From Piromyces finnis finn (Eukaryota > Fungi > Neocallimastigomycota): DNA of 64,000 bases. The stretch lies in assembly GCA_002104945.1 (NCBI GenBank), contig MCFH01000020.1, forward strand, positions 1 to 64,000, in the 5' to 3' direction. A model generated the notes under the pieces. The model did not search any database. It was not told where the DNA came from and saw only the letters and a list, made by a program, of their open reading frames with translations. This document shows, one piece after another, positions 762 to 42,622 of this stretch (positions are counted from its first letter, which is position 1; every line of letters starts with the position of its first letter). Both the position numbers and the translations under genes were made by a program.

Positions 762-3068
762 ATGTTTGGAATAATATTAATTACTGCGTTAATAGCAGTT
801 TTTATATCAAATGCAATTGCTTTTGAAATGAAATTGAATACTTTATATTTAACAGCTCGTGTTGATGGAATGACAGCTATAGATACAGTAGGTGCAGATC
901 AAAATTCAGTTGTACCAATGATGATGGATAGTTATGGTTTGAATTACGATACAGTTTTATTACCAACTAGCTCTTTAACTTTAGAAAAAGATAATGTTGC
1001 TTTATATAATACTATTGTTGTCGAAGGAGCTACTCTTCAACAATTAAATCAGGTTAAAGCACAAATTACAGCGTATCAAACTAAATATAAGATTAGAGTT
1101 GTATATTTAAATTGTGAGCCAGATCCTTTACAAGGTTTTAAACAAAATGGTTTTAATCCTATTCAAACTATTGCAATGAGAAATGTAAAGTTAACAGAAG
1201 AAGCACTTCAATTAGCACACCAATATCAAATGAAAGGAGATGATGTTAATTTCAGAGTAGAAACATGTATTCTTCGTGATATTACGGATGTCAATACTTG
1301 TATTCGATATCATCATTATGAAGTTGCACTTGAAAATCCATCCGATCCAAATATCAAACCACTTTTAAGTTTCTTAGATTTCGAATACAACCAAGAAATT
1401 GGAGCGTATGGAGGAGCACTTATTAATAACAATGGATTAGAAGAAATGCATTTTTGGATTTCATTTGTTGATTCTCATATTGCGTTTTTCGTTAGTCACA
1501 TATGGATTCCATGGGCCAACTATGGTATGATTGATGGCTATAGAAGACTCTTTTTCGAAATTCAAATTGATGATTACTTCACCGATAATTGCTTTAATAA
1601 GGCAGATTGTGAAGGTAAGAGAGAACCAGCAGGAGTTCCACATTACCGAACATCTGTTGAAGATATGAAGAATATTGCACAATGGCATAAAGATGTATCA
1701 AGCCGTTTACCAAAAGGATCCAACATTAAAATTGAATTAGCAATTAATGGTATTCATATTTTAACCGAAACACAACATAAAATCCAAGGGGTATTCCAAA
1801 ATTGGACAGTTCCAGAAACTGGGTATGATTACGTAAAGCCATTGGGTTTCCAAGGAACTAGTAGATGGCCAGAAGACATTGATGATGACTGGGATGATTC
1901 TTTATTACAACAATTAGATCCATTATATGCCTTCTTTAAGAAACCCGAAAATCAAGACAATTTCTATTGGCTTACTCACACTTTCACTCACTTGAAACTT
2001 GATGCAGCCTCCTACCATGATTCAGATATGGAAATGAGAGCCAATATCAAGATGAGTAAAGAGCCATATCTTGGTATGTATGATAGAGAATGTTACTCTA
2101 AGCATAGTATTGTCACACCCGAAATCAGTGGTCTTCACAATGGAGATAATTTAAAAGCATTTTCAGAAAATGGAGTTTATTATGCGGTTGGAGATACTTC
2201 ACGTACAGATCTTTCACCAGGTAATTTCTATTTCCCATTTATTTCTAATCAGACAACATCTAATTTTGATGGATTTGTTGTATTCCCACGTCAACCACCA
2301 CAAGTGTATTGGGATTGCTCTAGAATTGAAGAAAATATGGAAACATATAGATTAAGATATCCAGACCGAACATCCGTTACATGGGAAAAGCATTTAGATG
2401 AAGAAGCGGAACTTCATATTAAAAACTTTTTAAAATTAAGACATGATCCATATATGTTCCATGAAGGTAATTTAAGAAACGCAGATTTCCAAGAAGTTAC
2501 AATTGGAAAAGCCACAGGTAAATTTGGAATGATGCAACAATGGGTTGAAAGAATGGTTGTTGAAGTTGGAAAGTATTTAGATTGGCCAATGATTTCAGTT
2601 AAGATGGATGATCTTGCAGCATCGTATATTGATAGAATCAGTAGAGCAAGTTGTCAACCACAATATACCATGGTTATTGATGATGATTCAGGTATTATTA
2701 AGGAAGTTAAAGTTGAATCCCAAGCAGAAGTTAAGCTTAATATTGTTGGAGATTATAAAGCACAATGTCGTGCTCCATTATTTGTCATGAGAGATGTTGA
2801 ATTTAATGAGAAGCATGATATTCAAAATGTTGAAAAGATAGGAGATGAACCACCAACAGCATGGATAATTCTTGATAAGGCAGGAGAAAGTAAATCATTC
2901 AAATTTTCTAAAGAAATCAAGTATAATGATGAAAAGTTTGTAGGTAAATCCAGTGGAACATTTTTCTCAGGTTTTAAACTTTACTTAATAATTTTCGTTG
3001 GAATTGTTATTCTTTTACTTGCCGCTTACTTTATCATTAGCAAAAAACGCGGAAATAAATCTAACTAA
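762..3068 (+). CDS. agd3: Agd3-like (CE18) polysaccharide deacetylase, copy 1; signal peptide, C-terminal TM helix, short basic tail
   Basis: Intronless 768-aa ORF. Motifs EIQIDD, WLTHTFTH, EISGLHNGD, VGDTS, PRQP, DPYMFHEGNLRN match my recollection of the Agd3 DD / HTFTH / FH catalytic and metal-binding motifs. Hydrophobic N-terminus; TM LYLIIFVGIVILLLAAYFII followed by SKKRGNKSN. Confidence 0.82.
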   Translation: MFGIILITALIAVFISNAIAFEMKLNTLYLTARVDGMTAIDTVGADQNSVVPMMMDSYGLNYDTVLLPTSSLTLEKDNVALYNTIVVEGATLQQLNQVKAQITAYQTKYKIRVVYLNCEPDPLQGFKQNGFNPIQTIAMRNVKLTEEALQLAHQYQMKGDDVNFRVETCILRDITDVNTCIRYHHYEVALENPSDPNIKPLLSFLDFEYNQEIGAYGGALINNNGLEEMHFWISFVDSHIAFFVSHIWIPWANYGMIDGYRRLFFEIQIDDYFTDNCFNKADCEGKREPAGVPHYRTSVEDMKNIAQWHKDVSSRLPKGSNIKIELAINGIHILTETQHKIQGVFQNWTVPETGYDYVKPLGFQGTSRWPEDIDDDWDDSLLQQLDPLYAFFKKPENQDNFYWLTHTFTHLKLDAASYHDSDMEMRANIKMSKEPYLGMYDRECYSKHSIVTPEISGLHNGDNLKAFSENGVYYAVGDTSRTDLSPGNFYFPFISNQTTSNFDGFVVFPRQPPQVYWDCSRIEENMETYRLRYPDRTSVTWEKHLDEEAELHIKNFLKLRHDPYMFHEGNLRNADFQEVTIGKATGKFGMMQQWVERMVVEVGKYLDWPMISVKMDDLAASYIDRISRASCQPQYTMVIDDDSGIIKEVKVESQAEVKLNIVGDYKAQCRAPLFVMRDVEFNEKHDIQNVEKIGDEPPTAWIILDKAGESKSFKFSKEIKYNDEKFVGKSSGTFFSGFKLYLIIFVGIVILLLAAYFIISKKRGNKSN

Positions 3069-5175
3069 ATCGATTAAAGATTAATTACTTTATTAAAACA
3101 AACCTATATACATATACTTATTAATAACAAATAAAATAATATTATAGTAAATAACCTTTAAAATAGTGGTTAAAAAAAAAAAAAAAAACCACCAAAATTA
3201 TAATTCATTAATGTAGTGAATTTTTTTTATTATGTAATTTATATAATGTTATGTAATTCATAATATAACAATATATAATTTATATAACTAAAAATTTTAT
3301 AGTTGTATTTATAATATTATATCATAAAATATTATAAAATATAGTAATATAAAATTTAATTATTTATTATATTATTTAAATTATATCAATATCACAATAA
3401 GTAATTTCGAACTTGTATAAAATAATAATACAAAATTAAATTATTTCAATATACTTATGAATTATTTATTCTATAAAAATAAAACATAAAACGAAAAATA
3501 AATAAAATAATCATTAAATAGTTTTAACAATAGCATCATAATAAATTCAAAAGTTTTGTAAAAGCTTTTTTTTTGTTCTCCCTCTTTTCTTTTTAAAAAA
3601 AAAAATGAAGGATAAAAATAAAACTATAAAAACTAAATAATGGTAGTTAAAGAATAATTATATCTTTTTTAACATAATTCACAATACATAATACACATAA
3701 TAACATAATACATAATACATAATACATTAGATACACAATACAACTAGTAATAATTATAAAGTAAATAAAGAGGTACCTTTTTTTTTTTTTATTAATATTT
3801 AGTATTAATCCCCATAAAATTTAAATAATATATATTTGAAACTTTTCAAAAAGTAAAATAAATAAAATGTTTAAAAAAATTTTTTTTGTGATTCATAGAA
3901 TTTCTATTATCATCTGGTTTAATAAAATTGTGGAAATAATTAATTTATAGTATTGAACACAAAATATAAATTAAAACATGGCTTATAAAACAAAATCAAT
4001 ATTGTATTATAATAGATTATAAAAATACACCTTAATAATAAATAAATGAATGTGGCTATTGATATATTTCTATTACATATTTTTTAAAAAAAGAAAAACA
4101 AAAACAAAAATCAAAATTTCATTTATTAATTAAAGTTATTAATTATTGGAAAATTTTTTTTTATATGTCAAATATATATTATTAATATATAAAAAAGTTA
4201 TTGAAAACTTCTTTCGATATATATTATTATATTTGATTATTTGTGAAACCTTGATTTCTAGAAAGTGAAATTGATTTTTTTAAACATATAAAGCTTTTCT
4301 AATATATAATTATTCTTTTTATAGATTTATGATGAATATAGTATTAATTATTTATTAATAGCATACTCTTTAAATAATCATTTCTAAAATAATATAGTAT
4401 TATTATTTTTTATTAATAAAACATATAATTATTCTTTTTTTATTTCAAGGATTGATTTTTTTAATATAATATAGTTGTTTTAAATAATTTTTTTTTATTG
4501 TCATACTTTAATTTCCCTCAATTTCAATATATTGTAATATATGAATATTTAATTAATGCCATATATTATAGGAATGTTAATTTATTTTAAAAATTCTAAA
4601 AATGGATATATAAATTTTTATATATTGAAATTTAAGAGTTATTAAATCATGAATCCAAAAAACCCTATAAAAACCTTGATTATTCTCCAACTTTTTTTCA
4701 TATTTTAAAAAATTAATAAACATAACTCTATATTGAAATAAATAATATTCAGAAGCAAAAATAAAACAATAAATCTTCAAAAAGATTTAAAATGTTTTTA
4801 ATAATAAAATAGAAAAGCCTTATTATAACTTTGTAAATTCAATTATTAATATAATTAATATTTAGAATTATATTGATATTTTTTAATTTATAAATATAAA
4901 ACTTTCACAAAATTAAAAAATAAAAATAAAAAGTAATAAAAATAAAAAGTAATATATATATATATATAAAGGATATAATAAAATAGAAATTAAAATAATA
5001 AATAATTAAATAAATAAATAGATAAAATAGATAAATAAATAAATAATAATATTAACAATAAAAAAACATAACACAAACTAATATAATTAAAATAAGAGTA
5101 AAAACATTACCTTTGAAATAGATATAAAAAAGTATTATTATTAAACAAAGAGCAAAACAAACAAATAAACAAAAA

Positions 5176-7773
5176 ATGAATAGAATATTATTTATTACTG
5201 CGTTAATAGCAGTTTTTATATCAAATGCAATTGCTTTTGAAATGAAATTGAATACTTTATATTTAACAGCTCGTGTTGATGGAATGACAGCTATAGATAC
5301 AGTAGGTGCAGATCAAAATTCAGTTGTACCAATGATGATGGATAGTTATGGTTTGAATTACGATACAGTTTTATTACCAACTAGCTCTTTAACTTTAGAA
5401 AAAGATAATGTTGCTTTATATAATACTATTGTTGTCGAAGGAGCTACTCTTCAACAATTAAATCAGGTTAAAGCACAAATTACAGCGTATCAAACTAAAT
5501 ATAAGATTAGAGTTGTATATTTAAATTGTGAGCCAGATCCTTTACAAGGTTTTAAACAAAATGGTTTTAATCCTATTCAAACTATTGCAATGAGAAATGT
5601 AAAGTTAACAGAAGAAGCACTTCAATTAGCACACCAATATCAAATGAAAGGAGATGATGTTAATTTCAAAGTAGAAACATGTATTCTTCGTGATATTACG
5701 GATGTCAATACTTGTATTCGATATCATCATTATGAAGTTGCACTTGAAAATCCATCCGATCCAAATATCAAACCACTTTTAAGTTTCTTAGATTTCGAAT
5801 ATAACCAAGAAATTGGAGCGTATGGAGGAGCACTTATTAATAACAATGGATTAGAAGAAATGCATTTTTGGATTTCATTTGTTGATTCTCATATTGCGTT
5901 TTTCGTTAGTCACATATGGATTCCATGGGCCAACTATGGTATGATTGATGGCTATAGAAGACTCTTTTTCGAAATTCAAATTGATGATTACTTCACCGAT
6001 AATTGCTTTAATAAGGCAGATTGTGAAGGTAAGAGAGAACCAGCAGGAGTTCCACATTACCGAACATCTGTTGAAGATATGAAGAATATTGCACAATGGC
6101 ATAAAGATGTATCAAGCCGTTTACCAAAAGGATCCAACATTAAAATTGAATTAGCAATTAATGGTATTCATATTTTAACCGAAACACAACATAAAATCCA
6201 AGGGGTATTCCAAAATTGGACAGTTCCAGAAACTGGGTATGATTACGTAAAGCCATTGGGTTTCCAAGGAACTAGTAGATGGCCAGAAGACATTGATGAT
6301 GACTGGGATGATTCTTTATTACAACAATTAGATCCATTATATGCCTTCTTTAAGAAACCCGAAAATCAAGACAATTTCTATTGGCTTACTCACACTTTCA
6401 CTCACTTGAAACTTGATGCAGCCTCCTACCATGATTCAGATATGGAAATGAGAGCCAATATCAAGATGAGTAAAGAGCCATATCTTGGTATGTATGATAG
6501 AGAATGTTACTCTAAGCATAGTATTGTCACACCCGAAATCAGTGGTCTTCACAATGGAGATAATTTAAAAGCATTTTCAGAAAATGGAGTTTATTATGCG
6601 GTTGGAGATACTTCACGTACAGATCTTTCACCAGGTAATTTCTATTTCCCATTTATTTCTAATCAGACAACATCTAATTTTGATGGATTTGTTGTATTCC
6701 CACGTCAACCACCACAAGTGTATTGGGATTGCTCTAGAATTGAAGAAAATATGGAAACATATAGATTAAGATATCCAGACCGAGCATCCGTTACATGGGA
6801 AAAACATTTAGATGAAGAAGCGGAACTTCATATTAAAAACTTTTTAAAATTAAGACATGATCCATATATGTTCCATGAAGGTAATTTAAGAAACGCAGAT
6901 TTCCAAGAAGTTACAATTGGAAAAGCCACAGGTAAATTTGGAATGATGCAACAATGGGTTGAAAGAATGGTTGTTGAAGTTGGAAAGTATTTAGATTGGC
7001 CAATGATTTCAGTTAAGATGGATGATCTTGCAGCATCGTATATTGATAGAATCAGTAGAGCAAGTTGTCAACCACAATATACCATGGTTATTGATGATGA
7101 TTCAGGTATTATTAAGGAAGTTAAAGTTGAATCCCAAGCAGAAGTTAAGCTTAATATTGTTGGAGATTATAAAGCACAATGTCGTGCTCCATTATTTGTC
7201 ATGAGAAATGTTGAATTTAATGAGAAGCATGATATTCAAAATGTTGAAAAGATAGGAGATGAACCACCAACAGCATGGATAATTCTTGATAAGGCAGGAG
7301 AAAGTAAATCATTCAAATTTTCTAAAGAAATCAAGTATAATGATGAAAAATTTGTAGGTAAATCCAGTGGAACATTTTTCTCAGGTTTTAAACTTTACTT
7401 AATAATTTTCGTTGGAATTGTTATTCTTTTACTTGCTGCTTACTTTGTTTATGGTAAAATCACAGGAAATAAATCAGAAAGCAATTCCATGTATCATAAT
7501 AATCAAAACAATTTACAATATCAAAGTAATCCACAATTCCAAAGTAATTTTCAGTACAATCAAGGCCATCAATACCAACAACCACAAGAACCTTTAAAGA
7601 GTTACAATAATAACATGGCTGAAATGTATAATAGAAATAATATGATGGGCAATCGAAGTGGACCAACAAGTCCAATAAGTCCAACAAATGGTTATACTTA
7701 TGGACAAAGAAGCGATTTTCAAGATTTCAGAAAACAAAGAGGTGTTAGGAATTACACACAACTTAGAGACTAA
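5176..7773 (+). CDS. agd3: Agd3-like deacetylase, copy 2; TM helix plus ~100-aa Q/N/Y-rich cytoplasmic tail
   Basis: 865-aa ORF; core nearly identical to copy 1 with the same catalytic motifs; unique tail after the TM. Confidence 0.82.
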   Translation: MNRILFITALIAVFISNAIAFEMKLNTLYLTARVDGMTAIDTVGADQNSVVPMMMDSYGLNYDTVLLPTSSLTLEKDNVALYNTIVVEGATLQQLNQVKAQITAYQTKYKIRVVYLNCEPDPLQGFKQNGFNPIQTIAMRNVKLTEEALQLAHQYQMKGDDVNFKVETCILRDITDVNTCIRYHHYEVALENPSDPNIKPLLSFLDFEYNQEIGAYGGALINNNGLEEMHFWISFVDSHIAFFVSHIWIPWANYGMIDGYRRLFFEIQIDDYFTDNCFNKADCEGKREPAGVPHYRTSVEDMKNIAQWHKDVSSRLPKGSNIKIELAINGIHILTETQHKIQGVFQNWTVPETGYDYVKPLGFQGTSRWPEDIDDDWDDSLLQQLDPLYAFFKKPENQDNFYWLTHTFTHLKLDAASYHDSDMEMRANIKMSKEPYLGMYDRECYSKHSIVTPEISGLHNGDNLKAFSENGVYYAVGDTSRTDLSPGNFYFPFISNQTTSNFDGFVVFPRQPPQVYWDCSRIEENMETYRLRYPDRASVTWEKHLDEEAELHIKNFLKLRHDPYMFHEGNLRNADFQEVTIGKATGKFGMMQQWVERMVVEVGKYLDWPMISVKMDDLAASYIDRISRASCQPQYTMVIDDDSGIIKEVKVESQAEVKLNIVGDYKAQCRAPLFVMRNVEFNEKHDIQNVEKIGDEPPTAWIILDKAGESKSFKFSKEIKYNDEKFVGKSSGTFFSGFKLYLIIFVGIVILLLAAYFVYGKITGNKSESNSMYHNNQNNLQYQSNPQFQSNFQYNQGHQYQQPQEPLKSYNNNMAEMYNRNNMMGNRSGPTSPISPTNGYTYGQRSDFQDFRKQRGVRNYTQLRD

Positions 7774-8457
7774 AGTTAGATTCATCATTGAATAAATTTT
7801 TTTATGAATTTAAACAAAAAATTATTTTGAAAGAATATTCAACAATATAAAATGAATAAATTTTTTATGAAAATATATTCAAATTATAAGATTTTGTAAT
7901 ATATACTATAACCTATCCATCAATAATTATTATATAGTTTTAAAAAACTTTTAATATAATTTTAATTATATATATATATATATATACATACAAACAAATT
8001 AAATCATAAATAAAAGGAAAAATTAATAAATTTATTTGATATTAAATAATCTATAATTATTATTATATATTAAAAAAAAAAAAAATCTTACAGTATAATA
8101 ATACTGTTTTATTTTTTTTATTTTATTTTATTATTATAATTTTTTTTTAAAAGAAAAAAAAAAAGTGATAATCAATATAAGATTAATAAATTAGAAATCA
8201 ATACTTTTAAACCATCAAAAAAATAAAAGAAAAAAAAAAGAGAAAATATATATATTTTTTTCTATTTTTAAAATTTTATTAAGGTATAAATAAATAATGA
8301 ATTAATTTATTTCAAATTTTTATCAATAGATAAAAATATAAATAATAGATATTAATTAAAATATATACATGAATTTATAATTAATTAAAAGGTAACAAAC
8401 ATAGCAAAAAGAAAAGTAAAAAAAAAAAAAAAAAAAGAAGAAAAAAACAACTTAGAA

Positions 8458-9442
8458 TTATATATTATTTCTAGATGGATTACGGTTAGTTCTTCTTCTT
8501 GTTAATGTACGAGAAACACCAGTAGCAACACGAGTTGTAATATTTGTTACTTGAGCTCTTTTAACGAAAGCAAGAATACCAACACCTGCAGCAACAAGAC
8601 CTCCAAATACCACTGGAATAGTGGTATTACCATTTTCTATATTTTCTACAGCTTCACTAACATTATTTATATTGGCTTCATTATTAGTGTTAGAGTTTCC
8701 ATTGGTATTAACGTTATTATATTGAACATTGGAAGAATCGATACCTCTATCGTTTGAAGTTACAATATTAGTATCATCGGTATTAGCGTTACTAGAAGGA
8801 TTAGAAATAGATGGAGCTACATTTTCAGTAAGAATATTTCCTTCTGTAGAAGGCTTTTCTTCAGTTATTTCAGATGTTATTGGTGATGAAGATAATGTAG
8901 TTGCTTCAGATGTAGTTGTTTCAGAAGCAGTAGAAATAATTGTAGTTGTTTTTTCTTTTATTTCTTCAGTAGAAGTTAATGGTGATTTTCTTTGAGTGGT
9001 GGTTGTAGTAGTAGAAGTGTGTTTATTTTCTTCATTTATTTTATTATCTTTATCCTCCTCATCAGGTAATAAGTTTGAAATTACATTACTATTTTCAGAA
9101 ATAGTGGTTTTATCGGCTTGAGCTTCATTGTGAGCTAAATAATTACTACTACTTTTAGAAGATGAGATTGATTCTATGGTTGGTTTTTCTAATGTAGTAG
9201 TTGATGTAGTTCTTGATGATGTTGTTGTTGGTCTTTTAGTAGAAGTAATTGGTTCTCTAGTTGGTTGCTTTGTAGTAGTAGTAGTAGTTGTTGTTGTTGT
9301 AGTTGTTTTAATAACAGAGGTTGTTGGAATTTTTGTGGATGTAATGATAGGTCTAATAAGTTGTTTGGTAGTAGTAGTAGTAGTAGTTATTGGTTTTCTA
9401 GTAGTAGTAGTAGTTGTTGTGATTGTAGTTGGTTTTCTAGTT

Positions 9443-9477
<35 letters not shown>

Positions 9478-10439
9478 TGTTGTTGTTGTTGTAGTAGTTG
9501 TTGTTGTTGATTTTTTTGTGGTGGTAGTAGTGGTAGTGGTAGTTGTTGTTGTTGATCTTTTTGTAGTAGTTATTTTATCAGTGGTACTGGTCTTTTTACT
9601 AGAATTTATTTTTTCAAGGTATTCCCATGGCCACTCTTTTATTAAATCAATATCATTCATAGCCATATATTTTGCAACTTCGTTGTAACTTTCGATAATT
9701 TCTGATTTACTAATACCAGTTTCTTTTGAAAGGTTACTTAAATCATCACTATCATATTTGTTATTTACATATATTTTTCCTTCATCAGATATAACACTCC
9801 ATACAATTTCAAGAACACCTGTTGATTTTTTTGCTAATTTTTCAAAAAGAGTTTGACTTAAATCAATTTGAGTTTCACCACATGAACCACATTGATCAAT
9901 GACCTTACCCTTTACTATATATGAATTAATTAATGTTGTTTGTTAGAAATTAGAATAAAACCATTGATATAATATTGACATAATGGTATAATATTAATAT
10001 TTAAAATCATATGGTTATTTAATTACCAATTTTATAAGAACCAACAGCTTTTTCATAGTTAAGAGGCATAATGATGGCATATTTATCACAGTATTTGTAA
10101 TTTCCATTTTCTTTACTTTCGAAATAATTTGGATGCTATATAACAATAGAATTAATATTGTTGATTTGTTTATATATAGATTTGATTTTTTTTTTTTTTA
10201 ATATTTTAAATAGTCAATAATTTTTTTTTTCTAAAAAAAGTATATTATATAATTAAAAATATGATATTTACCATAGCTATAAAAAGATTATTCTTTGGTA
10301 TACCTCTTTCACATTTTGGATTTTCTTGTGTTTCACATTCATCTGGGCAACCATAAAATGTAGAACTGTAAGAATAATAGGTTGCATATGCACTATTGAA
10401 TAATAGGGCAATAAATAATATTAATGTATTTAATAACAT
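8458..10439 (-). CDS. Membrane-anchored RlpA-like double-psi beta-barrel (loosenin/expansin-like) protein with Thr/Ser-rich stalk; 3 exons (10439-10272, 10135-10027, 9914-8458)
   Basis: Splicing at GT-AG sites gives signal peptide + STFYGCPDEC...FIAMHPNYF...YCDKYAII...VKGKVIDQCGSCGETQIDLSQTLFEKLA...GVLEIVW, a typical DPBB signature (V-x-D-x-C-x2-C-x4-IDLS-x3-F-x2-LA). Then a poly-Thr stalk, TM IPVVFGGLVAAGVGILAFV and an Arg-rich tail. Confidence 0.75.
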
Positions 10440-11324
10440 TTTTAATTTTATTTTATTATTAATTATAGTTTTATTTTATTCTTTTTTGATATTATATATC
10501 TATTTATTTAACAATTTAATTATTTATATTTCCTTTTTTCTTCTATATTCTATTATTTTTATTATTTTATGTATTCTATTATTTATTATTGAGTTAAAAA
10601 TATTATAAAAAAAAAAGAAAATTTTTAGTTCTTTCATTTTGCTTTTATTTAAAATTTTGAATTACACAAGAACAAAAAAGAAATTACTATACATCATTAA
10701 TAAATTTTATTTATATTTAAATTTAATTTATTTAATTAGATATAATTTAAATCATTACTTTTGGTATTATTAAAGTTAATCAATATTTACAAATATTTTA
10801 AATATTAACAATTTTATTCTCTATTGTAATATAAAAAAAAAAGTTAAAAGTGTTATTAATATTTTTAAATAAGAATATATTGTGTAATAATATATATTAG
10901 TATAATCACTTTTTCTTTAATGCCACTCTTTTCTGAACCAAAATAATTAAAATTATTGAAATTATATTAATTATCGTTTCAACCCATCATATTTATTACA
11001 TTTTGTAATTAAACTTTTTAGTTTTATTTTAGATTTTTATAATGAAAACCAATAATGTTTTAACTTTTTATAAATTCAAAAATTTTTAGAGAATTAACAA
11101 TTTATTTTATTTTTTTATATCTATAATATATAGTAATATAAATAAACAGGTTTTAAAGTAATTTCTTTAATTTCTTTAATTTATTTTATTGCTATTTATA
11201 GTGTTTTTAATTATATAAATATTATTTATTAAAAATATTTATAACGATTAATATAAAGATTTGTTATTTGATAAGTAATAAAAAAAAAAGAAATATCTTT
11301 ATTCTAATAATGATAATGTGACCG

Positions 11325-11360
<36 letters not shown>

Positions 11361-12732
11361 GAGCCAACTAATTGAATACTATTGAATTAATAATAATAAT
11401 AAACATAATAATAATAAGCATAATAATCAGTACATTTTTATTCAATAATCTTTAATTTTTTTTATAAGAATTAACTTTTAATAGTTACAAAATATATATA
11501 GCCATCATAAAAATAAAAAAAAAAAAGTCATTTATAAAATTAAGAGATGAAATAAAACTTCATACAACATATATATGAATGAAATGAAAATATTGTTATA
11601 TTATATTGGTATAACAAACAATATATATACTTTATTCATTTTTTATTAAAAAGAAATATATTAATGAAATGAACTATTATTATTATTATTATTATTATTT
11701 TTGGTTAATAAAAAGTAGAATAATATCAGAAACTATTATAGTATTGAATATTACATAATAATAATAGCTAAAACTATATATATATTGAAAATTAATATAA
11801 ATTATTTGTGCAACCTTTATTTTTAAAATATAAATATTTTACAATCTTATAAAATTTGAATTTCTAAACTTTTTGTAAAAAAAAATTATCATATTTATTA
11901 TTAAATATTATTATGTAAAGTAGGTGATGTAAAAGTTTCATTTTATTATTATTTAGTTATTCTTCCTTATTATTTATTATCTAAATAAATATTTGAATAT
12001 TAAGTTTATAATAAAGAATAAATAAACAGTAAAAATGCTTTTTTTTTTTTTCAGAATTTTTTGACAGATTAGAAATAATTTTTAATATGGCTTGATAAAA
12101 CATTTCTTAATTATTAAACATAAAAAATAATTAACAATTACTTTTTTTTAAGGCTTTATGCTAAAATATTATTTAATTAATTCATATGATTTTAATTTAA
12201 ATATCCACAATTAAAAATAAGGGTTAATAATAAGGAAATTGTACAACTATAAATTAAAATGATAAATATAAAAAAAAAAAAATATTTATATTTAATATAA
12301 AAGTTTATTAATTATTTTTTTTTATATTGAAGTGTCAATTTTAGTTTTTTCATTTATATTGTTTTTTGAACAATATAAATAATATTAAAAAAAAAAAAAA
12401 GGAGAAAATCTATATTAATAAAGCCAAAACAAAAAAAAAAAAAATATTTCCTTTCATAAGATTTGCTTAGTAGATTTAATAATTGAAAAAAAGAAAAAGT
12501 TTTTTTTTTTCACATTTCAATTACATTCATTTCATAATTTTTATATATATATAATTAAATATATATATATATATATATAGACAATAGATTTGAAAAAAAA
12601 TTTCTTTAAAAGCAAATTTCATTTTTTTTTTTTTTAAATTAAAAATATAATATATAAAAGATATTTTTTTCTTCATTTTTGTTAAAAAAAAAAAACAAAC
12701 AAAAAAAAAGCAAATAATATATATAAAGCAAA

Positions 12733-15240
12733 ATGTTCAAAATATCTTTGGTAATAACATTATTATCAATTTTTATATCAAATGCAATTGCATTTGAAAT
12801 GAAATTGAATACTTTATATTTAACAGCTCGTGTTGATGGAATGACAGCTATAGATACAGTAGGTGCAGATCAAAATTCAGTTGTACCAATGATGATGGAT
12901 AGTTATGGTTTGAATTACGATACAGTTTTATTACCAACTAGCTCTTTAACTTTAGAAAAGGATAATGTTGCTTTATATAATACTATTGTTGTCGAAGGAG
13001 CTACTCTTCAACAATTAAATCAGGTTAAAGCACAAATTACAGCTTATCAAACTAAATATAAGATTAGAGTTGTATATTTAAATTGTGAGCCAGATCCTTT
13101 ACAAGGTTTTAAACAAAATGGTTTTAATCCTATTCAAACTATTGCAATGAGAAATGTAAAGTTAACAGAAGAAGCACTTCAATTAGCACACCAATATCAA
13201 ATGAAAGGAGATGATGTTAATTTCAAAGTAGAAACATGTATTCTTCGTGATATTACGGATGTCAATACTTGTATTCGATATCATCATTATGAAGTTGCAC
13301 TTGAAAATCCATCCGATCCAAATATCAAACCACTTTTAAGTTTCTTAGATTTCGAATATAACCAAGAAATTGGAGCGTATGGAGGAGCACTTATTAATAA
13401 CAATGGATTAGAAGAAATGCATTTTTGGATTTCATTTGTTGATTCTCATATTGCGTTTTTCGTTAGTCACATATGGATTCCATGGGCCAACTATGGTATG
13501 ATTGATGGCTATAGAAGACTCTTTTTCGAAATTCAAATTGATGATTACTTCACCGATAATTGCTTTAATAAGGCAGATTGTGAAGGTAAGAGAGAACCAG
13601 CAGGAGTTCCACATTACCGAACATCTGTTGAAGATATGAAGAATATTGCACAATGGCATAAAGATGTATCAAGCCGTTTACCAAAAGGATCCAACATTAA
13701 AATTGAATTAGCAATTAATGGTATTCATATTTTAACCGAAACACAACATAAAATCCAAGGGGTATTCCAAAATTGGACAGTTCCAGAAACTGGGTATGAT
13801 TACGTAAAGCCATTGGGTTTCCAAGGAACTAGTAGATGGCCAGAAGACATTGATGATGACTGGGATGATTCTTTATTACAACAATTAGATCCATTATATG
13901 CCTTCTTTAAGAAACCCGAAAATCAAGACAATTTCTATTGGCTTACTCACACTTTCACTCACTTGAAACTTGATGCAGCCTCCTACCATGATTCAGATAT
14001 GGAAATGAGAGCCAATATCAAGATGAGTAAAGAGCCATATCTTGGTATGTATGATAGAGAATGTTACTCTAAGCATAGTATTGTCACACCCGAAATCAGT
14101 GGTCTTCACAATGGAGATAATTTAAAAGCATTTTCAGAAAATGGAGTTTATTATGCGGTTGGAGATACTTCACGTACAGATCTTTCACCAGGTAATTTCT
14201 ATTTCCCATTTATTTCTAATCAGACAACATCTAATTTTGATGGATTTGTTGTATTCCCACGTCAACCACCACAAGTGTATTGGGATTGCTCTAGAATTGA
14301 AGAAAATATGGAAACATATAGATTAAGATATCCAGACCGAACATCCGTTACATGGGAAAAGCATTTAGATGAAGAAGCGGAACTTCATATTAAAAACTTT
14401 TTAAAATTAAGACATGATCCATATATGTTCCATGAAGGTAATTTAAGAAACGCAGATTTCCAAGAAGTTACAATTGGAAAAGCCACAGGTAAATTTGGAA
14501 TGATGCAACAATGGGTTGAAAGAATGGTTGTTGAAGTTGGAAAGTATTTAGATTGGCCAATGATTTCAGTTAAGATGGATGATCTTGCAGCATCGTATAT
14601 TGATAGAATCAGTAGAGCAAGTTGTCAACCACAATATACCATGGTTATTGATGATGATTCAGGTATTATTAAGGAAGTTAAAGTTGAATCCCAAGCAGAA
14701 GTTAAGCTTAATATTGTTGGAGATTATAAAGCACAATGTCGTGCTCCATTATTTGTCATGAGAAATGTTGAATTTAATGAGAAGCATGATATTCAAAATG
14801 TTGAAAAGATAGGAGATGAACCACCAACAGCATGGATAATTCTTGATAAGGCAGGAGAAAGTAAATCATTCAAATTTTCTAAAGAAATCAAGTATAATGA
14901 TGAAAAATTTGTAGGTAAATCCAGTGGAACATTTTTCTCAGGTTTTAAACTTTACTTAATAATTTTCGTTGGAATTGTTATTCTTTTACTTGCTGCTTAC
15001 TTTGTTTATGGTAAAATCACAGGAAATAAATCAGAAAGCAATTCCATGTATCATAATAATCAAAATAATTCTCAATATTACCAATCTAATATACCACAAC
15101 AATTCTCAAATGGCTATACCCAAACATTAAGAATTAATAATGATGTAAGAGCCACAGAAATTGGATTAAGACCAAATAATAATTATCAAGATAACCAAAA
15201 ACAAAAAGATTATAAAAATTATAAACAACTTATTAGTTAA
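12733..15240 (+). CDS. agd3: Agd3-like deacetylase, copy 3; TM helix plus ~70-aa Q/N-rich cytoplasmic tail
   Basis: 835-aa ORF; core nearly identical to copies 1 and 2; different signal peptide; tail diverges from copy 2 after MYHNNQN. Confidence 0.82.
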   Translation: MFKISLVITLLSIFISNAIAFEMKLNTLYLTARVDGMTAIDTVGADQNSVVPMMMDSYGLNYDTVLLPTSSLTLEKDNVALYNTIVVEGATLQQLNQVKAQITAYQTKYKIRVVYLNCEPDPLQGFKQNGFNPIQTIAMRNVKLTEEALQLAHQYQMKGDDVNFKVETCILRDITDVNTCIRYHHYEVALENPSDPNIKPLLSFLDFEYNQEIGAYGGALINNNGLEEMHFWISFVDSHIAFFVSHIWIPWANYGMIDGYRRLFFEIQIDDYFTDNCFNKADCEGKREPAGVPHYRTSVEDMKNIAQWHKDVSSRLPKGSNIKIELAINGIHILTETQHKIQGVFQNWTVPETGYDYVKPLGFQGTSRWPEDIDDDWDDSLLQQLDPLYAFFKKPENQDNFYWLTHTFTHLKLDAASYHDSDMEMRANIKMSKEPYLGMYDRECYSKHSIVTPEISGLHNGDNLKAFSENGVYYAVGDTSRTDLSPGNFYFPFISNQTTSNFDGFVVFPRQPPQVYWDCSRIEENMETYRLRYPDRTSVTWEKHLDEEAELHIKNFLKLRHDPYMFHEGNLRNADFQEVTIGKATGKFGMMQQWVERMVVEVGKYLDWPMISVKMDDLAASYIDRISRASCQPQYTMVIDDDSGIIKEVKVESQAEVKLNIVGDYKAQCRAPLFVMRNVEFNEKHDIQNVEKIGDEPPTAWIILDKAGESKSFKFSKEIKYNDEKFVGKSSGTFFSGFKLYLIIFVGIVILLLAAYFVYGKITGNKSESNSMYHNNQNNSQYYQSNIPQQFSNGYTQTLRINNDVRATEIGLRPNNNYQDNQKQKDYKNYKQLIS

Positions 15241-15556
15241 AGTAATGATTATATATATATATATATAAAAAGAGGAGGAGAGGGAGTATATAAAATCAAA
15301 TATTAAATTTTTTATTTAAATATTTAATAATTTAAAAACACTCATTTAAACCTTAGAAATTTTTTTGGATACAACTTAATTTATATTATACCGTTTATTT
15401 AAATTATAAGAGTGTTTTCATAACATTTATTTAAATTAGAAAAGTATGATTAGATGTTAAAATAATTATGAATTAGCAAATAAAAAAGAATAATTAATAA
15501 TATTTTATAAATAATTATATTTTAACAAAAATAAGAAAAAATAAACAAATGATGTC

Positions 15557-15650
15557 AGTTAATACTTGACATTTTTAATAGAAGAAATGAAATAATAAAT
15601 TTGAGTTAATACTTAACATTTTTAATAGAAAGAATGAAATAATAAACTTG
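15557..15650. repeat. Imperfect 47-bp tandem duplication
   Basis: agttaatacttgacatttttaatagaagaaatgaaataataaatttg followed directly by agttaatacttaacatttttaatagaaagaatgaaataataaacttg. Confidence 0.7.
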
Positions 15651-17046
15651 AAGTATAAAGAAATGAAATACCAAAAACTTTAATAAAATTATTTTTTAAT
15701 AATATAAAGAAAATTGGTAAATAATTAAAATTTTACCAAGGAAGTTTTGTATACATATAATTTTCCATTAATATTTCCTTATTAATTAATAATTTATCAA
15801 AGCTATCAAAATAATTGTATATATTTATTTAGCCATCCATTTTTTATTAAATTTCAAGTATTTTGTATTAATTTATTTATATATCTATTATTTAACAAAC
15901 GGAACACACCACCAATAATCTTCCTAGTTTTATTAAAATAGGACCAATAAAATAAAAGCAAATAAATACAAGTTATTAACTATTTAATATATATTTAAAT
16001 TATAATATATTAAATTACAGAAGAAAAGATGAATCTTTATATAAATTAAAATGAAAACTCTATATATAAAATAATTATATTATCATTAATAAGAATACAT
16101 ATAAAGCTGCAAAAATATCAATACAATATATTTATATTATGTATATTTTATATTATGTGAATAATTTAAAAGTAAAAAAGATCTTTTCATTGTAAAAAAT
16201 AAGTATAGACTAAATAGATTTTATTATCAAAATTTTATATTTTATCTATTTTTTTAATTAAAAATCAATTAAATAACAAGATATAAAAATGTAATATATA
16301 TATATATATATATATTAAAAACTACAAAAAAAAATCTATTTAATTAAAAAATATGAAATTCTGTAGTACATCATATTAACTAATTAATATTTAAAAATGA
16401 ATTTATATATATTTTTATATATATAAATATCAAATATAGATGAGAGAATATAGGTACTCGTGCAACTAATTAAAAAAATTTATTTTTAAATAATTAAAAT
16501 CTATATAATATAGTATAGATATAATATATGGTAAATATAATAATTAAGTAAAATTTTTTATTAAATTTGTAATTTATACTATTAATGTATTAATTCTATT
16601 ATATAATATTTCTTACTACATCATTTGTAATTAATACATAAATACATTATAATATACAGTAATATGTACAATAATATATGATATGATAACAATTTATAAT
16701 TAAATTTTATTAAATTTAATTTAAATACAATTAATATGATTATAAAGAAAAATTTAGATAATTAAACTATATTTTAATAAATTCAATTAATTATGCATTA
16801 TACCACCACTACTTTACCTTCCTTATTAAAGTATTTAGAAAAAAAAAAAAAAAAGAAATTATTCTAGAGAAAATTTAAAAAATCCAATAAAATTAATCAA
16901 TTTAATGACTATTACTAAAATATAAATAAAAATAAATATTTTTGTTTTGTCTAATAAACACATATTTTATTTTAATACCCTTTTTTAATTAATATACAAA
17001 AAAAGAAAGTATTTACATACTGAAAGAATAAATAATATATATTAAA

Positions 17047-19182
17047 ATGATTAAAAAAATAATAAATGTTGCTACTCTATTTGTAGCACTGATTTCAAGT
17101 GTTTTTGCATTTGAAATGAATATGAATACTTTATATTTAACTGAAAATAGACTTAATTCAATGGTAAGTTCAATGCTCGATAGTTATGGTATGAACTATG
17201 ATATTGTTCAATTACCAGCCAAATCTTTAGTTTTAGAAAAAGACAATGTAGCTTTATATAATTCTATTGTTATTGAAAATGCCAAACAAGAAACTTTATC
17301 TGGAATTAAAGCTCAAATTGAAGAATATTCAAAAAAATACAAAATTAGAATTGCTTACCTTAACAGTGAACCAGATCAAAGTGTTGCGGCAAACAGTCAA
17401 CAATCCATTTTCATGAGAAATGTAGTTTTAACCGATCAAGGTTATGAATTAGCCAGTAAATACCAAATGAATGGTAAAGATGTTCAATTCACTGTTGGAA
17501 CTTGTATTCTTGATACTAACTTTCAATGTATTCAATATACTCACTACGAAGTTGATCCAATTATTAAGGATTCTATAAAACCTCTCTTAAAATATACTGA
17601 TATAGAAGCTTATGCTGGTGCTCTTGTTAATAGTAATGGTATAGAATCAATTCATTTCTGGATACCATTTATCGATTCTCATATTGCCTATTTTGCAAGT
17701 CATCTTTGGATTTCATATATTAATTATGGTTTGATTGATGGTTATAGAAGACTATTCTTTGAAATTCAAGTTGATGATTATTTCACAGATAATTGTTTCA
17801 ACAGTTCTGATTGTTCAGCCACTCCAGATGCACCACACTATAGAACTTCTGTTGAAGATATGGAAAATATTGCCAAATGGCAAAAGGATATTTCCTCACG
17901 TATGCCAAAAGGTTCAGATTTTAAAGTTGAATTAGCTATTAATGGTATTCACATTTTAACAAAAGCTCAACATAAACAATATGAAATTAGAAACTGGACA
18001 GATTACCTTTTCCCATATGAATACAAGAAGCCATTAAATGAACATGGTAGTAGCAGATGGCCAGAAAAATTTGATGATGATTGGGATGATAAAATTTTAC
18101 AAGATGATAAACTTTATAAACATTTTAAGAATCACGACAATCAAGATAATTTCTTCTGGTTAACTCATACATTCAGTCACCAAAAACTTGATTATGCATC
18201 CTATCGTGATACTGATTTAGAATCAAAAGAAAATATTAAAATGAGTAAAGAACCATATCTTGGCATGTATGATAGAGATTGTTACTCTAAACATAGTATT
18301 GTTACACCAGAAATCAGTGGACTTCATAATGGTGATGCATTAAAAGCTTTAACTGATAATGAAGTTTATTATGCTGTAGGTGATACTTCTCGTGTTGACG
18401 TTTCTCCAGAAAACTTTTATCTTCCATTTATTACTAATATGACTACTTCCAACTTTGATGGTTTTGTTGTAATTCCACGTCAACCACCACAAGTTTACTG
18501 GGATTGTTCAACAATCGAAGAAAATATGGAAGTTTATAAAATGAGATACCCAGACAGAACTAATGTTACATGGGAACAACACTTGAACGAAGAAGCAGAT
18601 CTTCATGCCAAAAACTTTTTAAAATTAAGACATGACCCATATATGTTCCATGAAGGTAATTTAAGAAATAGCGATTTCAAAGAAGTTAGTATTGGTTCTG
18701 GTAAGGGTAAGTATGGTATGTTACAACAATGGGTTGAAAGAGTTACCGAAGAAATTCAAAAGTATATGAATTGGCCATTAGTTTCAATTAAAATGGATAA
18801 CCTTGCTCAAACCTATTTAACAAGAATAAGTAAAGAACAATGTAAGCCAAAATACACAATGGTAGTTGATGATTCCTCCTTTAAAATATCTGAAATTAAG
18901 GTAAAGGCTACTACTGGTGAATGTAAAGTTCCATTATTAGCTATTAAAAATACCGAATTTGATAAGTCTACAGTAGATTCTATTGAAAAACTTGGTATGG
19001 ACCCACAAACGGCTTGGATTAATGTCAATGACAAATCTGTAAAATCTGTTAAATTTACAAGCAGTGTTCAATGGAATGATGATTCCTACACTGCCAAAAG
19101 TGGTAGTATTATCGCATATTCTATCTCTAGCTTAAAAATTTTATTATTAGTTGGTATTGCCACTTTATTCATCATGCATTAA
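17047..19182 (+). CDS. agd3: Divergent Agd3-like deacetylase, copy 4; probable GPI-anchor signal
   Basis: 711-aa intronless ORF with EIQVDD, WLTHTFSH, EISGLHNGD, DPYMFHEGNLRN. Ends KSGS + spacer + hydrophobic LKILLLVGIATLFIMH with no cytoplasmic tail. Confidence 0.8.
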   Translation: MIKKIINVATLFVALISSVFAFEMNMNTLYLTENRLNSMVSSMLDSYGMNYDIVQLPAKSLVLEKDNVALYNSIVIENAKQETLSGIKAQIEEYSKKYKIRIAYLNSEPDQSVAANSQQSIFMRNVVLTDQGYELASKYQMNGKDVQFTVGTCILDTNFQCIQYTHYEVDPIIKDSIKPLLKYTDIEAYAGALVNSNGIESIHFWIPFIDSHIAYFASHLWISYINYGLIDGYRRLFFEIQVDDYFTDNCFNSSDCSATPDAPHYRTSVEDMENIAKWQKDISSRMPKGSDFKVELAINGIHILTKAQHKQYEIRNWTDYLFPYEYKKPLNEHGSSRWPEKFDDDWDDKILQDDKLYKHFKNHDNQDNFFWLTHTFSHQKLDYASYRDTDLESKENIKMSKEPYLGMYDRDCYSKHSIVTPEISGLHNGDALKALTDNEVYYAVGDTSRVDVSPENFYLPFITNMTTSNFDGFVVIPRQPPQVYWDCSTIEENMEVYKMRYPDRTNVTWEQHLNEEADLHAKNFLKLRHDPYMFHEGNLRNSDFKEVSIGSGKGKYGMLQQWVERVTEEIQKYMNWPLVSIKMDNLAQTYLTRISKEQCKPKYTMVVDDSSFKISEIKVKATTGECKVPLLAIKNTEFDKSTVDSIEKLGMDPQTAWINVNDKSVKSVKFTSSVQWNDDSYTAKSGSIIAYSISSLKILLLVGIATLFIMH

Positions 19183-20039
19183 TTATTATTATTACTTTTT
19201 TTTTTTAATATATTAGACTTAACTCCATTTTTTTTTTTTTTTTTTAAAAAAAAAAGGCATAACAATATATATAAAAGAAGAATAAGAAAAAAAAATAGAG
19301 TTAAATAGATATTATATAGAAATATTTTTTTTTAATATTTATATATTTTTATTTTTAATGAATAAAAAAAAAAAAAAGAAATTTAAAGTAATAGTACATA
19401 TATTGTTTTTCTTTTCTTTTTTTTTTTTTCCCTATTATTTATCCAATATAACTTATTTTAATGATTAAATGACTATTTATTTTCCATTATTATAAAAAGA
19501 TTAATATATTATTATTATTATGAATAAATATTTAACCCAAAGAAATTGATTATTTTATTAATAAATTAATAATAATAAAAAGCATAAAAGCAAAAAAAAA
19601 AAAAAAAAAGTAAGCAAATTAATAATAAATTTAACTCTTTTTTGTGTTAATTATATGTCATACAGGTGTTTATAAAACTAATAAATATTAAATCATGGTA
19701 AATTAAAAAAAAAAAAAAAAAAAAACATTTTTTATTAAACTATCGCCATAAAAGTTGTTTTCTATATGGATTAAAAAAAGTTGTCAATATTAAACGATAA
19801 TGAAAAAAAAAAAAAAAAAACTTTAAAACATTTTCTTCCGGTACCATAATAATGACATGACAACAATAAAAAAGCTAGTTTATCTAATAACCTATTTAAT
19901 TTATCTGATTTATTAATATTAAACTTTTATAGTTTTTTTTTTTTTTCCCTTATCTAACTATTTATATAAATGGCATTTTATTATTGTTATATCTTTTATT
20001 CTATAATAGATTTTAAGAAAAATTAAAATAGTTTTTTTA

Positions 20040-25827: not shown

Positions 25828-28101
25828 ATGAATATTATTCAATTAATCCGTAATTTATTACAAAGTGAAAAATGTTTATCTAATAAACATAAAATAATAA
25901 TTAATAATGAATATTTTTCATTTTTTGAAGGAATAAGTATTATTAATTGTAATAATCTTACTAAAGATAAATATACTATTGAATATATTGAATATAGTAA
26001 TGGTATTAAATATAACAATAATAATATAAATGACAATCTGAATAATTTTTTACTTATTAATACTTTTGAAAAAATATGCAATGAAAAAATATTTAAATAT
26101 AATTTTGATTTGAAAGATATAACAAAAACAAATTATTATATATCTATAAATATACCTTCATATACACTTAAAGATATTTATAATAAAATAATAAAGTTAA
26201 AATTACCAAATACTTGTCAATATGTAACTGCTTTTATCAAAAGAATAAATTACTATCATTACTTTAATAAAAGGTATACTGAAATGTATCAATATAATCA
26301 AGTGTTAATTGCAGAAGATAAAAATAAGAATATTAAAGATTCAGATAATTTCATAATTATTAAATGTTGTCATGATAGTATAAGAATCACTGGAAATAAA
26401 ATAACATTTTATGAAAGAGATACCTATGATAATATTATTTGTAAATTATTACCGTGTTTAAATTATTCAAGAGACCAAATACTAATTAGATTTAAACCAA
26501 GTATTGTTTCTTTTACTTATCCAATAGCTATAAATTTCCAACTGTTTGATTTGTTGTTATATGATAATGCTTTATATCCTTATATATATACTAATGAAAA
26601 TGAAGATATAATAAAAATAAAGAAAAATTGGTATATACAATAAATATCTTTAATCAATCATTAAATATGAAACTATATAACAAATATAAACATTTTACAG
26701 AAATTATCCAATTTCAAGAATTAGAATGGTATATGTATATGATTGTTAAAATAATATTAAATTATCTTTATTTATTATATATTGATTTTCATATAAGTTA
26801 TAATCAAAAAAATAAAATATTAAATATTCCATTAAAAATAAATTATAATCGATTATTTGGAAAATATTATACTAGATATTTTAATAATAAGGATAAAGTA
26901 TTACCAGTAATTGCTGATAAAGAAGAATGTATTAAGAATAATATACCATATGTACAGTGGAATAATAATTATTATAGATCACCAGAAAATTCAGGATATA
27001 AAATTATTCTTTCAACAAATAAAAATTCTACTGATAATAACTTTGTATTTCATGATAAAAAGTTATTATTTGATTCAGAATCAGAATCAAATCTTGTTCT
27101 TAAATGTGTTAAAGTGATAAGAAAGTACAAAAAAAAAGAAAAAGAAAAATATGTTTACTTTAATATAGCATATAAACTAGACAAACATTGTAAAGGAAAA
27201 TTTCCTTCCAATTTATTTATATCTTATGGCTATGAATTACAAGGTTTATATAGACAATATTTTGATATTCCAGAAATAAATAATAAATTTATAATATGTT
27301 CTAAATGTAATAAATACATTAATATTCCTAGTCAACATGAATTAATAAATTGGATAAAAGAAAAGTTTAAGAATAAACAATTAAAACTAATAAATGAAAA
27401 TTACAATTACAATGATATTAATATACTATCTTTTTCAGTAGATAATAATATGAATATATATCCATATTGTGTTTTTGATTATGTCTACAATTGTAATTCT
27501 TCTTTTCCCTTTTTAATAATAATGTTAAATACATGTAAATTATTTACACTTACTAATTATAGATATGAATATGTAGTAAGTTCAGATAAGAGTTTGTTCA
27601 ATATTAATAATGATTTTGTACAAGCTATATTTTCTATGTTTAAAAAAAATTCAATTTCAATCATAGATAATGCTAAATTAAATAAATACATTAAACAATA
27701 TGTTTCATGTTTCAGATAATAAAACAGTTTTAATAACAGAAAAGGAATTTCCAGATGAAAAGGTATATTTATGGAGATCGATTTATTCAGAAATAATACC
27801 AACAATACCAATAATAAAAGATAATGATGAATTATACAATACACTACCATCATTTTCTTTTTTATGTAAGAATATTAAAAATATAACTGCATATCACTAT
27901 AGTATTATGAATGAAAACAATAAAAAAAGTTATTATCTATGGTGTGATGTATGGGATAATGAAGATTATTATCCATGTAAAGCATCCATAGAAATATTAA
28001 AATCAACTATCATTAATAAACCTTATTTATTATTAAAAATAAATTTAGATGGATCTATCTATTCATCTTTCAAAAATAATTCTATTTATATGATTTTTTA
28101 G
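25828..28101 (+). pseudogene. Intronless ~750-aa ORF in three frameshifted pieces, resembling the Nucleocytoviricota early transcription factor large subunit (VETF-L / poxvirus A7-like)
   Basis: Overlapping ORFs 25828-26643, 26628-27719, 27700-28101 join into one frame by two single repairs. The order of motif-like segments (FDLLLYDNALYPYIYTNE..KK; LFGKYYTR..LPVIADKEE; NYYRSP..; YKLDKHCKGKFPSNL..YRQ; INILSF; YEYVV; KQYVSDNKT) follows my recollection of giant-virus VETF-L proteins. Not verified by search. Confidence 0.5.

Positions 28102-39642: not shown

Positions 39643-42622
<2,980 letters not shown>

Follow-up and report, generated by a model that had tools for sequence, protein, structure and literature searches.

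Anaerobic gut fungi possess a clade of Agd3-type deacetylases that is defined by a C-terminal anchor, and for which we found no earlier description in the literature. We analysed four of its members, O1 to O4, which form an array at the very start of Piromyces finnis scaffold 20 (MCFH01000020.1; 820,574 bp; assembly GCA_002104945.1); the first 64,000 nucleotides of this scaffold are referred to below as the window. The four genes encode true CE18/Agd3 enzymes with intact catalytic residues. In the most likely reading, to which we give a probability of about 0.6, they are surface-tethered de-N-acetylases that act on a polymer rich in N-acetylgalactosamine (GalNAc) made by the fungus itself, the substrate being the putative part. 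A sequence-only reading of the window had described four intronless open reading frames (ORFs) of the Agd3 type in a probable anaerobic gut fungus, all of them encoding a signal peptide and a C-terminal anchor. The source is such a fungus, P. finnis, and all four ORFs lie where they had been placed, on the + strand (768, 865, 835 and 711 amino acids). Their features are:

762..3068, + strand: O1, CE18/Agd3-type deacetylase of 768 amino acids, intronless ORF (signal peptide, residues 1-20; CBM87, ~52-251; CE18, 293-634; beta-rich C-terminal domain, ~633-720)
2979-3047, + strand: transmembrane helix of O1 (residues ~740-762), followed by an 8-residue basic tail
5176..7773, + strand: O2, 865 amino acids, ectodomain as in O1, intronless ORF
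7393-7455, + strand: transmembrane helix of O2 (residues 740-760), followed by a 107-residue Q/N-rich cytoplasmic tail
7753-7764, + strand: YxxL in the tail end RNYTQLRD of O2
12733..15240, + strand: O3, 835 amino acids, ectodomain as in O1, intronless ORF
14950-15012, + strand: transmembrane helix of O3, followed by a 77-residue Q/N-rich tail
15220-15231, + strand: YxxL in the tail end DYKNYKQLIS of O3
17047..19182, + strand: O4, divergent paralogue of 711 amino acids, intronless ORF (signal peptide, residues 1-21; CE18, 240-602)
19099-19179, + strand: GPI-like (glycosylphosphatidylinositol-like) C-terminal signal of O4 (residues 685-711), predicted from the sequence pattern

The Pfam domain Agd3_CE (PF25115; cut-off 27.6, as for CBM87) matched all four ORFs with 297-301 bits (E ~1e-88 to 1e-89). 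CBM87_Agd3 scored 37-40 bits in O1-O3 and 24.7 bits in O4, and the match to Agd3_C was weak in all four ORFs (17-23 bits). When O1 was compared with PDB sequences using phmmer, a single chain was found, that of Aspergillus fumigatus Agd3 (6NWZ, E 4e-60, residues 54-640). We then built an AlphaFold2 model of O1 from 54 homologues (mean pLDDT 88.6, pTM 0.87), in which a beta-rich C-terminal domain was modelled at residues 633-720; the array proteins follow the three-domain plan of Agd3 (CBM87, CE domain and beta-rich C-terminal domain). In a Foldseek search of this model against the PDB, the best match was again 6NWZ (E 2.6e-52, TM-score 0.75 as TMq and 0.85 as TMt, 738 alignment columns), followed by human NDST1 deacetylase domains (TM-score ~0.43) and then PelA.

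Agd3 activity requires D377, D378, H510, H514, R613, M666 and H668 (Bamford et al. 2020, PMC7229062). In an alignment to Agd3, these residues correspond to D270, D271, H406, H410 (HTFTH), R510, M565 and H567 in O1-O3, and to D243, D244, H374, H378 (HTFSH), R478, M533 and H535 in O4. The CE18 motifs CM1-CM4, comprising the base Asp, the Asp-His-His metal triad, the CM3 Arg and the CM4 Met-x-His, are retained in all four ORFs. Agd3-type identity, as proposed from the sequence, is thus borne out by sequence, motifs and fold, and the domain and structure searches suggested at that time led to Agd3 and not to another CE family. Like Agd3 (CE18, CBM87; 6NWZ), the array proteins have a three-domain ectodomain, four catalytic motifs and the Agd3 fold (TM-score 0.85), but Agd3 is secreted and encoded within the five-gene galactosaminogalactan (GAG) cluster, whereas the array proteins are C-terminally anchored, form a paralogue array without partners and are only ~25% identical to Agd3.

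How are these proteins anchored? Each ORF starts with a hydrophobic signal sequence that ends in A-x-A and is followed by FEM, and hydropathy detected one C-terminal hydrophobic segment per ORF. The signal peptide and the anchor are therefore both borne out by hydropathy, and for O1 the anchor helix was also modelled (residues 735-764). The transmembrane segments of O1-O3 have a Kyte-Doolittle value of 2.9-3.0 over 19 residues and are followed by KKRG in O1 and by YGKITGNK in O2 and O3, so that these three proteins have the features of type I single-pass proteins: a cleavable signal peptide, one C-terminal transmembrane helix and basic residues after it. O4 ends differently, with S685-G-S, a spacer of about 10 residues, 13 hydrophobic residues and one last residue, a pattern that its orthologues P0009, P0011, P0015 and P0036 retain. 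This end has the usual shape of a GPI signal, and O4 is probably GPI-anchored.

Three kinds of anchor can thus be told apart: (i) a transmembrane helix with an 8-residue tail; (ii) a transmembrane helix with a tail of 77-107 residues that holds YxxL; and (iii) a GPI-like end. All three were found again in homologues of other anaerobic fungi. The long tails are variable, and nearly all carry a terminal [DE]Y[KN]NYxxL or a close variant, which is common to O3 and six long-tailed homologues (P0004, P0006, P0007, P0012, P0014 and P0018); the tail of O2 ends in the looser RNYTQL, in which YxxL is retained. The terminal YxxL resembles an endocytic sorting signal and may act as one. Among the anchored homologues, the long-tailed metagenome protein P0018 carries N in place of H406 and Y in place of H567. 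Judging by these two substitutions, this paralogue has probably lost catalytic activity, yet it has the anchor and the YxxL tail.

To place the array among its relatives, we collected 104 sequences. A word search that used a profile of 11 sequences added nothing to the 56 proteins known by then, and a search seeded with a Nowakowskiella protein was needed to reach the chytrids, one ascomycete and one alga. Bacterial genomes were scanned with two narrow peptide patterns, which gave seven Bdellovibrionota loci, so that bacterial sampling in the trees is thin. The array genes fell in a clade exclusive to anaerobic fungi among the relatives collected (support 100), on a long stem of 0.87-1.1 changes per site. 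A C-terminal anchor was present in ~37 of the 44 rows of this clade (~85%) and in none of 48 other CE18 relatives examined (secreted anaerobic-fungal proteins, Nowakowskiella, Cladochytrium, Gonapodya, Phlyctochytrium, 1 ascomycete, 1 green alga and 2 metagenomic proteins).

A second anaerobic-fungal CE18 clade (support 99) consists of secreted proteins, often with a dockerin (PF02013) or CBM1 (PF00734). Among the relatives compared, these modules were confined to the secreted clade, and none was found in the anchored one. Both P. finnis members of the secreted clade that we inspected are spliced. The proteins of this clade and the chytrid CE18 proteins (Gonapodya, Nowakowskiella, Cladochytrium, Phlyctochytrium) share family and domain order with the array proteins and belong with them to one eukaryotic clade, but they are only 27-38% identical to the array proteins and lack a C-terminal anchor. 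In the secreted clade (P0048-P0055), Q also replaces the M666 equivalent, giving QFH for MFH, in 7 of 7 aligned rows.

Could the intronless genes be a bacterial import, as the sequence-only reading had suggested? In a quick LG+G4 tree with one ascomycete, few bacteria and an assumed root on five Bdellovibrionota proteins, eukaryotic CE18 formed a clade with support of 100, and both anaerobic-fungal clades joined Gonapodya (support 96) within the chytrids. The best bacterial identity was 24-29%, against 30-33% to Nowakowskiella. Because the genes belong to this eukaryotic clade, nest with Gonapodya among chytrid homologues and show lower identity to the bacteria sampled, we rejected horizontal transfer; vertical descent with an old duplication fits the tree.

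The array is also likely to be transcribed. Of the words sampled from 12500-19500, 61-69% were present in each of four runs from three studies, a fraction close to the coding share. Contigs from these runs began at 16950 in all four and ran uninterrupted across O4, reaching 19176 in two runs and 19041 and 18666 in the others, which defines one further feature:

16950..17046, + strand: probable 5' leader of the O4 transcript, contig starts in all four runs

Upstream, contigs covered 13400-15078 and then passed into the O2 tail (runs X2-X4, with loose ends at 15078), and a contig of run X1 spanned 15036-15526, corresponding to the O3 tail and 3' untranslated region. Between 15079 and 16949, three runs had no coverage, and the fourth had none apart from the O3 tail contig and a short stretch of low depth near 16300; 16436-16828 and the sequence beyond 19200 were covered in none of the four runs. 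Coverage restricted to coding sequence and a leader of ~100 nucleotides looks like transcription that is colinear with the genome and without introns. Consistent with the claim that the genes are intronless, the contigs of the four runs follow the genome colinearly through O4 and through the 3' part of O3. In the public annotation, only O4 has a complete model. The O1 model has 746 amino acids, consistent with a start at M23 that would omit the signal peptide; that of O2 holds the last 340 amino acids only, and that of O3 is split (641 and 64 amino acids). Public models of three of the four genes are thus fragmentary, masking the anchored architecture.

None of the ORFs of at least 120 amino acids in the window has a Gtb3, Ega3, Sph3 or Uge3 domain, in agreement with the sequence-only reading, which had seen no other GAG genes there. 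Likewise, the surroundings of the CE18 genes that we inspected elsewhere (P. finnis scaffolds 1 and 7, A. robustus, Piromyces sp. E2 and Neocallimastix) held no GT4 synthase, GH114, GH135 or epimerase gene up to a distance of 10 kb. The array genes are therefore not clustered with gtb3, ega3, sph3 and uge3 as in the GAG cluster.

Different neighbours were found outside the anaerobic fungi. In a metagenome-assembled genome of Pseudobacteriovorax antillogorgiicola (L008:1144-14948), the CE18 gene has as its neighbours two PelF-like DUF3492-GT4 genes and a Polysacc_synt_2 gene, in a cluster that also includes a GHL15 gene and a CBM87-only protein. In Nowakowskiella sp. JEL0407 (L009, JADGJK010000084.1), a stretch of 22 kb contains at least three CE18 genes, which adjoin Polysacc_synt_2/NAD-epimerase and Sel1 genes; two further CE18 genes are found on that contig.

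What is the function of the anchored enzymes? The array genes would encode active, metal-dependent polysaccharide de-N-acetylases (CE18) equipped with a CBM87 and a beta-rich C-terminal domain. The signal peptide would direct the proteins into the secretory pathway, and the C-terminal anchor, a type I transmembrane helix in O1-O3 and probably GPI in O4, would keep the catalytic ectodomain on the outer side of the plasma membrane or wall. There, the enzymes may meet their substrate near its exit from the membrane, a self-made polymer that we infer to be rich in alpha-1,4-linked GalNAc and similar to GAG or Pel. Deacetylation would make this polymer cationic and adhesive, by analogy with PelA and PgaB in bacteria and membrane-bound NDST in animals, and the three kinds of anchor would probably set different residence or trafficking.

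Several observations favour this reading. Agd3 acts specifically on alpha-1,4-GalNAc and shows no activity on chitin or chitosan oligomers, and this preference argues for a GalNAc-rich substrate together with the co-expansion of GH114. Bacterial CE18 relatives, moreover, adjoin PelF-like GT4 genes, a polymer context that lends it support. A parallel is found in bacterial PelA (CE21), PgaB/IcaB (CE4) and B. cereus PelA-DA (CE26), envelope de-N-acetylases that make Pel or poly-N-acetylglucosamine (PNAG) cationic (PMC7229062, PMC13254593). They share the logic of polymer modification beside the synthase, but all of these bacterial enzymes belong to other CE families and their genes lie in operons with a synthase.

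Other observations weigh against the reading of a self-made GalNAc-rich polymer. (i) The CBM87 score of O4 lies below the Pfam cut-off. (ii) The array proteins share only ~25% identity with Agd3, so that specificity may differ, and at this identity the substrate cannot be read from the sequence. (iii) Neither the window nor any of the five other CE18 neighbourhoods inspected holds a synthase, GH114, GH135 or epimerase gene. (iv) The literature holds no report that we could find of a GalNAc or galactosamine polymer in anaerobic fungi. (v) Sequence rules alone point to a GPI anchor in O4 and to a sorting function of YxxL, and the four runs are only guessed to be RNA. More generally, the substrate, activity and localisation of anaerobic-fungal CE18 are presumed.

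Could the substrate instead be another N-acetylhexosamine (HexNAc) of the wall, either chitin converted to chitosan or the glycan of a wall glycoprotein? Wall-remodelling enzymes are typically anchored to the membrane or by GPI, and the GPI-anchored CE4 chitin deacetylases of fungi are surface-anchored HexNAc deacetylases, although they differ from the array proteins in family, fold extension and substrate. A role of this kind would be consistent with the long stem (0.87-1.1 changes per site) that sets the anchored clade apart from other CE18 groups, with its low identity to Agd3 and with the weak CBM87 score. However, Agd3 does not act on chitin or chitosan oligomers, the CE18-specific motifs (CM3 arginine, CM4 MFH) are all retained, and GH114, whose known substrate is alpha-1,4-galactosaminide, is also expanded in these genomes. 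We therefore consider another wall substrate unlikely, while it is the strongest of the alternatives.

A less likely possibility is that the enzymes attack foreign polymers, such as a bacterial Pel- or PNAG-type matrix or host or feed glycans, for competition, detachment or nutrition. The rumen is rich in bacterial biofilms, and the sister CE18 proteins of anaerobic fungi carry a dockerin (PF02013) or CBM1 (PF00734), as degradative enzymes do. These modules, however, are absent from the anchored clade; foreign polymers would be poorly reached by an enzyme fixed to the membrane of its own cell, and deacetylation alone would yield little nutrient. On balance, this makes foreign substrates improbable.

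Alternatively, the proteins could work inside the secretory or endosomal system, modifying a glycan before export and using YxxL tails for retrieval. The model would be NDST1 of the animal Golgi, the N-deacetylase domain of which is membrane-tethered, has a related fold and acts on a nascent alpha-1,4-linked HexNAc polymer. Human NDST1 deacetylase domains were indeed the second-best structural matches, and YxxL is conserved at the tail end. In contrast to the array proteins, NDST1 has a type II topology in the Golgi and a fused sulfotransferase, and its TM-score is only ~0.43; a YxxL-type signal is lacking from O1, with its 8-residue tail, and from O4, with its GPI-like end; and Agd3 itself works extracellularly (PMC4817252). 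An intracellular role thus ranks below foreign polymers, as decidedly improbable.

In addition to their anchors, the array genes are distinguished by near-identical ectodomains:

769..3061, + strand: homogenised tract, 99% DNA identity to 5183-7475 and 12760-15032

Between O2 and O3 this identity extends over 5143-7521 and 12701-15078. It ends within the signal-peptide codons on the 5' side of O1-O3 and at or after the transmembrane codons on the 3' side, beyond which the flanks are unalignable. Over a 2.2-kb core, 4 sites distinguish O2 from O3 and 18 distinguish O1 from either of them, whereas the first 60 nucleotides of O1-O3 show up to 17 differences and the tails of O2 and O3 show 70. O4 is more distant, with ~61% amino-acid identity in the alignment (67% over the first 640 residues; 71.6% at the nucleotide level).

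A similar array, likewise at a contig start, was found in Piromyces sp. E2, with the order CE18, CE18, minus-strand gene, CE18. The C-terminus of the minus-strand gene product matches window positions 8458-9666, where a gene also lies inside the P. finnis array:

8458..10439, - strand: multi-exon gene encoding a signal peptide, Cys-rich start, Thr-rich stalk, transmembrane helix and basic tail

Exon 1 of this gene (10439 to ~10260) encodes the signal peptide and the Cys-rich start (STFYGCPDECETQ). The Thr-rich stalk is mucin-like, and the Thr-rich exon, the sole part scanned, had no Pfam match. The orthologue occupies the matching position in the E2 array (L011:13740-15671). E2 copies B and C are 87% alike and only 68-70% identical to O1-O3, and in the tree O1-O3 form one clade (support 99) that is sister to mixed short-tail and long-tail forms of other species. 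The shared order and the within-genome likeness imply that the array predates the species and that ectodomains were homogenised within genomes while their ends stayed distinct. We propose that gene conversion keeps the O1-O3 ectodomains near-identical and leaves signal peptides and tails distinct. We found no earlier description of the homogenised ectodomains or of the synteny with E2.

An assembly artefact was rejected, and this explanation of the O1-O3 near-identity, or a very recent duplication of no lasting significance, is highly improbable: the core is 99% identical and the array lies at the extreme start of the scaffold, but the run contigs pass from the common core into two different tails, signal-peptide and tail codons are strongly diverged against 4-18 differing core sites, E2 has the same gene order and intervening gene with copies ~87% alike and ~68-70% identical to O1-O3, and both short-tail and long-tail forms recur in other species.

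Together with the reading of a self-made GalNAc-rich polymer, these features allow a wider and more tentative model, a dispersed eukaryotic counterpart of the Pel/GAG system. In it, a PelG-PelF-like synthase would export a GalNAc-rich polymer for deacetylation at the surface by the tethered CE18 clade, and the three anchors would send an ectodomain homogenised by gene conversion to different surface compartments, for example rhizoid tips and wall, giving the fungus an adhesive, cationic coating that binds plant fibre or partner microbes. We regard this model as possible but, taken as a whole, doubtful.

The sequence-only reading knew of no description of such a system in this group, and this was not supported. 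Bamford et al. (2020, PMC7229062, section 13) had reported Agd3 homologues in anaerobic herbivore symbionts and Gonapodya, and the P. finnis locus-tag prefix BCR36DRAFT occurs 15 times in their Supplementary Data 1. MycoCosm counts for P. finnis, reproduced in a 2025 review, are 16 for CE18 and 19 for CBM87. In addition, GH114 belongs to the expressed CAZy families of highest abundance in anaerobic fungi, and this abundance led Gruninger et al. (2018, PMC6054980) to speculate on a GAG-like polymer. In contrast, we found no literature on the anchoring, arrays, substrate or function of anaerobic-fungal CE18 and no functional study of Agd3, GAG, exopolysaccharide or adhesion in anaerobic fungi, and a P. 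finnis membrane-proteome paper mentions neither deacetylases nor GPI. CE18 membership was therefore already catalogued, and the anchored clade, the three kinds of anchor and the homogenised syntenic array are the undescribed detail.

The remainder of the window, the G+C content of which is 13-33%, holds other genes. Three adjoining ORFs at 25828-28101 on the + strand (271, 363 and 133 amino acids) have no Pfam match. On the - strand, three tandem ORFs at 39643-49615 (443, 489 and 506 amino acids) match 7tm_3, the class C G-protein-coupled receptor family, the first of them below the Pfam cut-off. They are followed on that strand by a 1,510-amino-acid ORF with a reverse-transcriptase domain at 51221-55753, a retroelement of higher G+C content (~30-33%), and by a glycogen synthase ORF at 57640-59763 (PF05693, E 7e-299), an ordinary housekeeping gene.

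What does the anchored clade mean for anaerobic gut fungi? Of the CAZy families of these fungi that do not act on plant cell walls, CE18 and GH114 rank among the larger ones. With an anchored, likely transcribed and catalytically intact clade in conserved arrays, a catalogue entry becomes a testable idea, namely that these fungi modify a hexosamine polymer at their own surface. If true, this would bear on the attachment of rhizoids to fibre and to methanogens, and the making of a cationic exopolysaccharide by deacetylation would extend from bacteria and ascomycetes to early-diverging fungi.

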